In this document: piece by piece, positions 9,035 to 9,950 of the stretch
Layout: each line of letters begins with the position of its first letter
Position numbering within the stretch: position 1 is the stretch's first letter
Assembly: GCF_006345805.1 (NCBI RefSeq)
Contig: NC_042997.1
Location: forward strand, 30,814,001 to 30,878,000
From: Octopus sinensis
Taxonomy: Eukaryota
Direction: 5' to 3'
DNA: 64,000 bases
Position numbers and translations under genes: made by a program
Notes under the pieces: model-generated
Database searches by the model: none
Told to the model about the DNA's origin: nothing
The model's input: only the letters and a program-made list of their open reading frames with translations

Positions 9035-9950
9035 ATAGGTGAATGAATTATCCTATGTTTATCGTCAGCATGGAAAATTCGTTGAACCGAAACCAGGGTA
9101 GCAAATTCACGTCAGAAACACGGTTGAAGCGACCTGTCCAAGGGTAGAAACTTCGGGTTCATGTGCAGAAATTTGTGTGTTGTATATGAATAAATGAAAG
9201 AATGGAGTCGAACGAAGATGTTAACAAAATTCCTTTACTCTCGACATATGTTTTGAAGACAACGTGGTTTCATTCCAAAGGAATAAAGGGTGCATTATGC
9301 AATCTTTTCATCAGGAAAGAAAGGGAACCTCTCTCGACAACAAGACAAACAAAAATTTCGATGACTGCCTACATGGTAAACAAAACGATAATGAGTGTTT
9401 TTAAAAAAACCGTTAGAAGACTTGACGTCAAAGTTAGATAGTAGGAAGAGAAGGGTTAAAGGAATAATAGGTAGGGAACAAGTGGAGAGGGAAGGGTACG
9501 TTGATTGAAAGAATGTTCGAAGGCTTAGGAAAGAATTTCGCTATTGAAGTGGAGTGCACGTTAAGCTAATTGTTCAAACCACAGTGACTATCGTTATCAT
9601 TTATATGAATAAAACGTATCAATCAACATACCCTTCCCTTCTCCACTTGTTCCCTACCTATTATTCCTTTAACCCTTCTCTTCCTACTATCTAACTTTGA
9701 CGTCAATTCTTCTAATGATTTTTTTTAAAAACACTCATTATCGTTTGTTTACCATGTAGGCAGTCATCGAAATTTTTGTTTGTCTTGTTGTTGAGAGAGG
9801 CTCCCTTTATTTCCTGATGAGAAGATTGCATAATGCACCCTTTATTCCTTTGGAATGAAACCATGTTGTCTTCGAAACATATGTCGAGAGTAAAGGAATT
9901 TTGTTAACATCTTCGTTCGACTCCATTCTTTCATTTATTCATATACAACA
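9035..9950. mobile_element. Penelope-like non-coding element with inverted pLTR-type arms
   Basis: Arms 9178-9508 and 9619-9950 are inverted, with an HHR motif in each. The left arm has about 140 extra bp. Inserted in the microsatellite linker of a SINE. Confidence 0.7.
9803..9896 (+). ncRNA. Type-I hammerhead ribozyme motif, intact core
   Basis: CTGATGA at 9814-9820; helix II GAAGA/TCTTC; GAAA at 9874-9877; helix III AC-ATAT-GT; cleavage triplet GTC ending 9885; helix I CCTTTATTTC/GAGAGTAAAGG (10 bp, 1 bulge). Confidence 0.8.

Follow-up and report, generated by a model that had tools for sequence, protein, structure and literature searches.

The host gene

The window, that is, the whole 64-kb stretch of octopus DNA that was analysed, carries exons of a formin gene on its + strand. 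Two ORF fragments on this strand have matches to Pfam FH2 (E=1.5e-14), and the protein closest to them, at 85% identity, is a diaphanous-like protein of Octopus bimaculoides. This protein also served as the tblastn query for the last four of the exons given here:

6555 to 6678 (approximate), + strand: formin exon coding for FH2, upstream of the element, with AG before and GT after
12278 to 12428 (approximate), + strand: formin exon coding for FH2, downstream of the element, with AG/GT boundaries
14219 onward, 16471-16611, ~19740-19907, 23523-23627, and 36744-36836, + strand: further formin exons, from ORF matches or tblastn

When the exons are spliced with the two candidates at 6555-6678 and 12278-12428 included, the product matches Pfam FH2 with E=2e-21 over profile positions 25-312. 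Because FH2 exons flank it on the + strand, the mobile element described below sits in the sense direction within an intron (6679-12277) of an octopod formin. An upstream poly-proline ORF (266-919) yields no homologue and matches no Pfam family; going by its composition and position alone, it looks like an FH1 region.

A head-to-head element inside a SINE-like repeat

The mobile element occupies positions ~9032-9954 and is composed of two 5'-truncated copies, joined head-to-head so that their 3' ends and their hammerheads point outward. The window also contains another, older insertion of this family. The features of the two sites are as follows:

8877 to 9031, + strand: left half of the interrupted SINE-like repeat, by comparison with the intact copy at 8000-8337
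9032 to 9173, - strand: 3' extension ("tail") of ~140 nt, joined to the inverted copy alone, from the alignment
9174 to 9496, - strand: left arm, an inverted 5'-truncated copy of the element, from the arm-arm alignment
9232 to 9325, - strand: decayed hammerhead twin, by alignment with the right arm
9497 to 9631, no strand: central spacer of 135 nt between the arms, from the repeat boundaries
9632 to 9954, + strand: right arm, a direct 5'-truncated copy with the AC-rich end CATATACAACACACA and no tail, from the alignment
9803 to 9896, + strand: intact type-I hammerhead motif, from its listed pairs and a sub-threshold match to Rfam Hammerhead_1
9948 to 10071, no strand: (AC)~25 followed by (AT)~39, adjoining the direct copy at its 3' end, from tandem-repeat analysis and repeat comparison
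10072 to 10242, + strand: right half of the interrupted SINE-like repeat, by comparison with the intact copy at 8000-8337
38136 to 38439, - strand: second, older insertion of the element family, from BLAST of 9035-9950 against the window and alignments

The two arms of the first insertion differ at 14 of 325 aligned columns (4.3% divergence). Weak inverted similarity, detected by nhmmer, reaches into the spacer as far as about 9548-9583; the spacer represents either additional sequence from further upstream in one copy or what remains of a junction that has decayed. The second insertion is 76-83% identical to the first (about 18% diverged) and consists of the tail, 46 nt of the inverted copy, and a direct copy of 128 nt that is 5'-truncated inside the CUGAUGA box. 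The first insertion has 323 nt of each copy, separated by the spacer. In both, the order is the tail, the inverted 3' part, and then the direct 3' part, and the truncation points differ. The tail, which lies at 38300-38439 in the second insertion, is non-coding, and the direct copy ends in both cases with TTCATTTATTCA(T/C)ATA, followed by a microsatellite. An nhmmer search of the 64-kb window yields no copies beyond these two insertions, and an exact-pattern scan for two stretches conserved in the element finds no match in metagenome, prokaryote, and viral contigs. Ten ORFs of the window and an octopus protein, looked up as exact matches, likewise give no contig. As a counterpoint, the shorter second copy could also stem from an internal deletion of a hairpin-bearing element.

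The first insertion lies within the SINE-like repeat and splits its internal (CA)n(TA)n microsatellite; the intact repeat at 8000-8337 provides an empty-site comparison. The (AT) run next to the direct copy is the target microsatellite. The (AC) run, absent from the corresponding position in the intact host repeat, has probably expanded out of the AC-rich element end. The second insertion has (TA)n on both flanks, and a target-site duplication is not definable at either insertion. Apart from (AC)n and (AT)n, Tandem Repeats Finder (TRF) reports no arrays, and a head-to-tail tandem array is lacking.

All reading frames of 9032-9954 are closed, which rejects a coding element, and the six-frame ORFs of the 64-kb window contain neither RT (YxDD) nor GIY-YIG motifs, which rejects an autonomous Penelope-like element (PLE) nearby. 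Other identities were also considered and discarded. A SINE is rejected, as ARAGORN finds no tRNA-like head and an internal T8 run argues against transcription by Pol III; a Helitron or a Tc1-type MITE is rejected by termini that do not match. The features of a MITE or foldback DNA transposon are lacking more generally: in each insertion the ~140 nt on the left is unique sequence, the termini are not complementary, and a target duplication is not definable. Finally, L1-style twin priming is rejected because both arms duplicate one and the same region.

The hammerhead motif

The motif in the right arm has the type-I topology, in which helix I is open and helices II and III are closed. Helix I pairs 9804-9813 with 9886-9896 to give 10 bp, one of them G-U, with G9890 bulged. 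The CUGAUGA box (9814-9820) and the GAAA box (9874-9877) supply the conserved core, which is complete (C3 U4 G5 A6 N7 G8 A9, G12 A13 A14, A15.1-U16.1, and H17). Between them lies helix II (9821-9873), whose first pair is G10.1-C11.1, within a 6-bp base (GAAGAU/GUCUUC), beyond which a U.U mismatch leads into a 4-bp stem and then an 8-bp distal hairpin. There is no unpaired nucleotide between A9 and 10.1, since G9821, paired with C9873, directly follows A9820. Helix III has only 2 bp (A9877-U9884 and C9878-G9883), closed by an AUAU loop. The stretch formed by helix III and its loop, ACAUAUGU (9877-9884), is a palindrome over its full length, with a predicted self-duplex of -8.4 kcal/mol; this is the minimal helix III, palindromic at 15.2-16.2 and loop 3, that is seen in PLE-associated hammerheads. 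The triplet is GUC with C17 at 9885, placing the cleavage site predicted from the sequence at 9885/9886.

Fast hammerhead cleavage requires a tertiary contact between helix I (a loop or bulge) and loop 2. No canonical loop-loop motif between helix I and loop 2 is recognisable in the 9803-9896 motif, in which helix I has only the bulged G9890 and helix II has the U.U internal mismatch. As an isolated RNA of 104 nt, the fragment has an unremarkable predicted stability (z = -1.0), and its hammerhead-compatible fold, at -17.2 kcal/mol, lies 3.7 kcal/mol above the MFE of -20.9 kcal/mol.

Chance expectation and covariance models

How often such a motif would arise by chance was estimated by scanning both strands of 776 Markov-1 random windows of 64 kb with a hammerhead descriptor:

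Helix I of at least 6 bp, helix II of at least 4 bp: 0.03 matches per random 64-kb window
Helix I of at least 8 bp, helix II of at least 5 bp: 0.0013 matches per random 64-kb window
Helix I of at least 10 bp, helix II of at least 6 bp (the observed values): 0 matches in 776 random windows

With stringent settings, the same scan of both strands of the real window returns the 9803-9896 motif as its sole match.

Tested against covariance models, the hammerhead assignment of an earlier note on this DNA came out mixed. There is no Rfam hammerhead match at the gathering score in the whole 64-kb window, nor one at E<=10 within 9000-10000. However, when a 121-nt segment is searched, RF00163 (Hammerhead_1) is the top family (9808-9891, E=0.029), with the full model (1-45) aligned and every core position matched. 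The score of 18.4 bits remains below the gathering cut-off of 34. It is low because helix II holds 49 nt inside, versus the 10 expected by the model. Neither the antisense twin at 9232-9325 (E<=10) nor the second copy at 38136-38439 gives an Rfam hammerhead match. Sub-threshold Rfam matches on 9437-9692, to plant microRNA and snoRNA models, are hairpin artefacts.

These results bear on a first alternative, in which an unrelated repeat, of foldback or MITE type and produced by a DNA transposon or a replication snap-back, contains a hammerhead-like motif by chance. A sub-threshold Rfam score is what such a motif would give, and so are the ordinary z-score of the isolated fragment and the energy gap between its hammerhead fold and the MFE. 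In addition, the rate found with relaxed descriptors, 0.03 per 64 kb, means that some matches are expected in a gigabase genome. At the observed stringency, in contrast, the random windows contain none. The motif by itself is suggestive, and it is the context that settles the question.

The decayed twin and the second copy

Alignment of the arms reveals what has happened to the hammerhead on the - strand. The twin has lost two core bases, G12, which is now A (window position 9254), and G10.1, also now A (9307), and each of two helix changes, A to C in helix I (9319) and U to C in helix II (9264), introduces a mismatch. These results agree with the earlier note, which had described the antisense twin as inactivated by a GAAA to AAAA change and by a G to A change in helix II; the features and coordinates that it had claimed for the sense motif (the core, the helices, the AUAU loop, and the GUC at 9885/9886) are likewise all present. 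The G12 change falls at the CpG formed by C11.1 and G12. A CpG is a mutational hot spot, and the twin illustrates the ease with which these ribozymes can be inactivated through the C11.1-G12 CpG. The hammerhead occupies 29% of the arm length and contains 4 of the 14 arm-arm differences, which is the neutral expectation; there is no sign of selection.

The available comparison is of three copies, two of which come from one insertion event. At all 11 testable core positions (U7 to A9, G10.1, C11.1, G12 to A14, A15.1, U16.1, and C17), the second insertion retains the hammerhead base. Helix II is also preserved there, through an A-U to G-C double change and through one-sided changes of U-G to C-G and G-U to G-C, and the C15.2-G16.2 pair is lost. 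The conservation seen in the sequence is consistent with a genuine structural module, but with three sequences it is weak evidence, since the chance that all 11 positions would be kept at 18% divergence is ~0.1. It also speaks against a chance motif, since an independent copy has retained every testable core base and has maintained helix II by compensatory changes.

Comparison with Penelope-like elements and retrozymes

Insertions of PLEs are often heavily 5'-truncated and can be accompanied by an adjacent, inverted, 5'-truncated copy, which generates inverted repeats (Craig et al. 2021, PMC8557442). A PLE tail, frequently present at one end only, is 30-40 nt long, and the hammerheads lie near the 3' end; the insertions are strongly biased toward (TA)n/(CA)n microsatellites, which masks target duplications; and non-autonomous derivatives have the 3' end alone in common with autonomous families (PMC8557442). 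The two octopus insertions are similar in many of these respects, with head-to-head 5'-truncated copies, variable truncation, 3' ends that point outward, an extension at one end only, and a (TA)n/(CA)n target at which no target duplication is recognisable. Differences are also apparent. The octopus tail is ~140 nt rather than the published 30-40 nt, and the octopus element has neither an ORF nor a head-to-tail pLTR at its locus. It appears to be non-autonomous or heavily truncated. The link to PLEs is one of architecture only, because neither the element nor the window contains an RT or GIY-YIG ORF. PLEs are abundant in octopus genomes, including that of Octopus vulgaris (PMC13282606).

A study of PAc has provided a mechanism for PLE insertion, in which the PLE protein makes cuts in the two DNA strands at AT-rich sites and extends both, reverse transcription begins within an AC-rich internal site located ~85-92 nt beyond the point of hammerhead cleavage, and the tail corresponds to the sequence between two alternative start sites (PMC11167929). 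The octopus element also has an AC-rich 3' end downstream of its hammerhead, at 60-69 nt past C17 versus ~85-92 nt in PAc. We count this as the published distance, and as such it is a further point against a chance motif, as is the finding that the inverted repeats of both octopus insertions are not terminal, with ~140 nt of unique sequence at one end. The lack of a PLE open reading frame in the window leans the other way, as do the TA repeats that flank both insertions, since TA is also the target of Tc1/mariner-type MITEs. On balance, a chance motif in an unrelated repeat is unlikely, although it is the strongest of the alternatives discussed here.

Hammerheads with a minimal, palindromic helix III have been found in the repeats of PLEs, and truncated PLEs can carry paired hammerheads on opposite strands, 100-700 bp apart (Cervera & de la Pena 2014, PMC4209133). 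In vitro, monomers of minimal-helix-III hammerheads do not cleave, and dimers cleave weakly or poorly (PMC4209133). The octopus motif resembles these hammerheads in being type-I, in its full core, its G10.1-C11.1 pair and a helix II of at least 6 bp, in its location within a dispersed repeat, and in having a 2-bp helix III and a palindromic loop, a combination that implies dimeric action; the two octopus hammerheads are likewise on opposite strands, with a gap of 478 bp. Unlike the published motifs, it lacks an unpaired base between A9 and 10.1, and its helix II has a distal extension of 41 nt. Helix I (10 bp with a bulged G) is longer than the 4-5 bp helix I of the Schistosoma families. Animal non-LTR retrozymes are similar to the octopus element in being non-coding and low in GC and in having a type-I hammerhead, which in invertebrates has the same 2-bp helix III and tetraloop. 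However, retrozymes are head-to-tail arrays of 170-400-nt units that give rise to circular RNAs (PMC7229834), whereas the octopus copies are inverted. Among cephalopods, a squid genome carries annotated Rfam Hammerhead_1 loci (PMC6962438). The octopus motif matches the RF00163 core fully, yet at its score it goes unseen at the scale of the window, suggesting that octopus has a PLE-related family whose hammerhead, with its unusually long helix II, is missed by the Hammerhead_1 gathering score.

The hammerhead within the formin pre-mRNA

When the whole element is folded as RNA, the prediction is a near-perfect hairpin of ~330 bp (-614 kcal/mol, z = -80) in which the hammerhead is wholly paired to the left arm. 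As the left arm is transcribed first, there is no interval in which the ribozyme could fold freely. With a helix III of only 2 bp, a second sense copy is needed, by the published data, for a dimer to form. The transcript has no such partner, because the sole candidate is antisense and mutated. Given the lack of a sense partner and the predicted ~330-bp duplex that would lock it, cleavage of the formin pre-mRNA by the hammerhead is very unlikely, and we infer that it does not occur. It is more plausible that the predicted duplex would serve as a substrate for ADAR editing or for Dicer than that the RNA would cleave itself.

A second alternative is that the host has co-opted the ribozyme. In this case, the sense hammerhead would cut the formin pre-mRNA co-transcriptionally and tune its output, and the left arm would act as a gate, opened, for example, by A-to-I editing or a helicase. 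Cephalopods perform heavy RNA editing, which counts in favor of this idea; so do the position of the motif on the sense strand of an intron and the condition of the two copies, as the sense copy has all of its core bases and the twin lacks two. Intronic hammerheads are also mentioned for vertebrates in work cited in PMC7229834. The rest of the evidence is against it. The insertion is young, as judged by the 4.3% divergence of its arms, and the hammerhead region bears a neutral share of the differences; that the three polarised changes are all on one arm has a probability of 0.125 by chance. Furthermore, a hammerhead with a 2-bp helix III and no sense dimer partner belongs to a kind whose monomers are inert and whose dimers are weak (PMC4209133), it would have to escape a duplex of -614 kcal/mol, and vertebrate retrozymes are depleted from introns (bioRxiv 10.64898/2026.07.22.740005). 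Co-option is therefore highly improbable. Its conditional form, in which the sense hammerhead would be a switch of the formin pre-mRNA, silenced by the antisense arm and freed by A-to-I editing or a helicase, is the least probable proposal of all; if true, it would connect cephalopod RNA editing with ribozyme control of transcript output.

A third alternative takes the long ~330-bp hairpin as the working unit, either as a source of endogenous siRNA or as a site of hyper-editing, and is compatible with a transposon origin of the element. The hairpin is indeed near-perfect, and it elicits a sub-threshold response from Rfam microRNA-precursor models, which shows hairpin likeness only. These matches are to plant families, far under the cut-offs, and are artefacts; moreover, any inverted transposon pair would be expected to behave alike. 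A working hairpin is thus improbable, a little more so than a chance motif but clearly less so than co-option.

The hammerhead is best read as a passenger in the formin pre-mRNA, transposon debris within an intron, for which a function in the host gene is unlikely. The interpretation that the earlier note had given is upheld only in part, since the motif, the PLE and retrozyme context, the position, and the masking hold, whereas a ribozyme that works for the gene is not supported. Its placement of the motif in sense position in a formin intron is borne out by the flanking FH2 exons and the spliced Pfam match; its association of minimal, palindromic type-I hammerheads with PLEs and retrozymes agrees with the literature (PMC4209133); and the masking that it had proposed, by a ~330-bp duplex of the arms, is seen in the predicted element fold. 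In contrast, its suggestion that the formin pre-mRNA contains a potentially cleavable ribozyme runs counter to the low covariance score, the missing sense dimer partner, the capture in a duplex, and the lack of any sign of selection.

Proposed origin of the insertion

The reading that we favor, with a probability of about 0.72, is that ~9032-9954 is one non-coding retroelement insertion, which is either mobilised by a PLE or is the 3' end of a 5'-truncated PLE, and that the hammerhead is the element's own 3'-proximal module. The octopus hammerhead is best read as one of a known kind, a PLE-borne relic, and not as a ribozyme used by the formin gene.

The insertion may have come about as follows. 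Within the SINE-like repeat, a PLE endonuclease would make a cut in each strand of an AT-rich target, (TA)n, and each free 3'-OH would then prime reverse transcription of the element RNA. A start at the AC-rich internal site would yield a tail-less copy, and a start further downstream would yield a copy with the ~140-nt tail. Joining of the two 5'-truncated cDNAs head-to-head would create two arms with no sequence difference at the outset and would place their hammerheads on opposite strands, pointing outward. Since then, the arms would have diverged by 4.3%, with the left hammerhead losing G12 (at the CpG) and G10.1 and the right one remaining untouched by happenstance. If the hammerhead has any activity in the life cycle of the element, it would be as a dimer, on element transcripts that are multimeric or arranged in tandem.

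For the formin gene the insertion is of little import, and it has some value for annotation. Should the element family prove large, it would lend itself well to testing for covariation and to building an improved covariance model for the hammerheads of PLEs. The locus also represents a clean, datable case of the PLE head-to-head insertion structure, with an empty-site comparison nearby. A clock for octopus transposable elements equates a JC distance of 0.09 with ~25 My (PMC13282606); by this clock, the divergence of the arms would make the insertion roughly 6 My old.

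CpG decay of the hammerhead twin

The C11.1-G12 step of the type-I hammerhead is a CpG, present at 9873-9874 in the motif at 9803-9896 (+) and corresponding to 9254-9255 in its decayed minus-strand twin, and the loss of G12 in the twin is a typical CpG transition. Since several other arm-arm differences are likewise CpG versus TpG, the sequence hints that the hammerhead-bearing repeat may be methylated in the germline.

Spurious matches to RNA models

The inner part of the hairpin formed by the two inverted arms (9437-9692) matches Rfam models of plant microRNA precursors, namely MIR2118 (51 bits), MIR408 and MIR946, all under threshold. 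A plant microRNA precursor was rejected here, as such matches are an artefact expected of any long inverted repeat. In its relaxed form the hammerhead descriptor also responds weakly at ~27184 (-), with a helix I of 5 bp and a helix II of 4 bp, in low-complexity DNA; this match is at chance level (0.16 matches expected per window).

Repeats and transposon fragments

A SINE-like repeat that contains a (CA)n(TA)n microsatellite is very abundant in the window, its translated pieces, e.g. FLQLDALPNANHSESVVGAF, recurring throughout, and the hammerhead element inserted into one of its copies. Copies lie at many other places besides these:

8000-8337 (+), SINE-like repeat
8877-9031 plus 10072-10242 (+), SINE-like repeat
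10794-11000 (-), SINE-like repeat

Directly 5' of the formin FH2 exon at 14219, ~135-nt units form a tandem array (13100-14100) akin to the tail part of this repeat; its minus-strand translation gives repeated RKRAPFEYDRYQRRLTGTCACASRVPRALSE blocks. Degenerate CA/TA low-complexity DNA occupies about 3 kb at ~26900-30500. Its strands are extremely asymmetric, the GC skew at 28-30 kb being +0.67, and it gives rise to spurious long ORFs in which His, Thr, Tyr and Ile are abundant.

Fragments of LINEs are also present:

48379-48762 (-), C-terminal end of LINE ORF2
~20000-20250 (+), C-terminal end of LINE ORF2
12371-12727 (+), another LINE-like fragment, zinc-knuckle

The two ORF2 fragments are mutually related ('HLF.LH..NTRGH.YKVRKQH..HDF.KHFF..RV.EAWNKLPASVV') and possibly RTE-like. 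The zinc-knuckle fragment starts in the final part of formin exon 12278-12428 and continues into the intron. Within a formin intron, an ORF at 22682-23071 (+), for which no Pfam match over threshold was obtained, resembles the acidic N-terminal part of piggyBac-type transposases.
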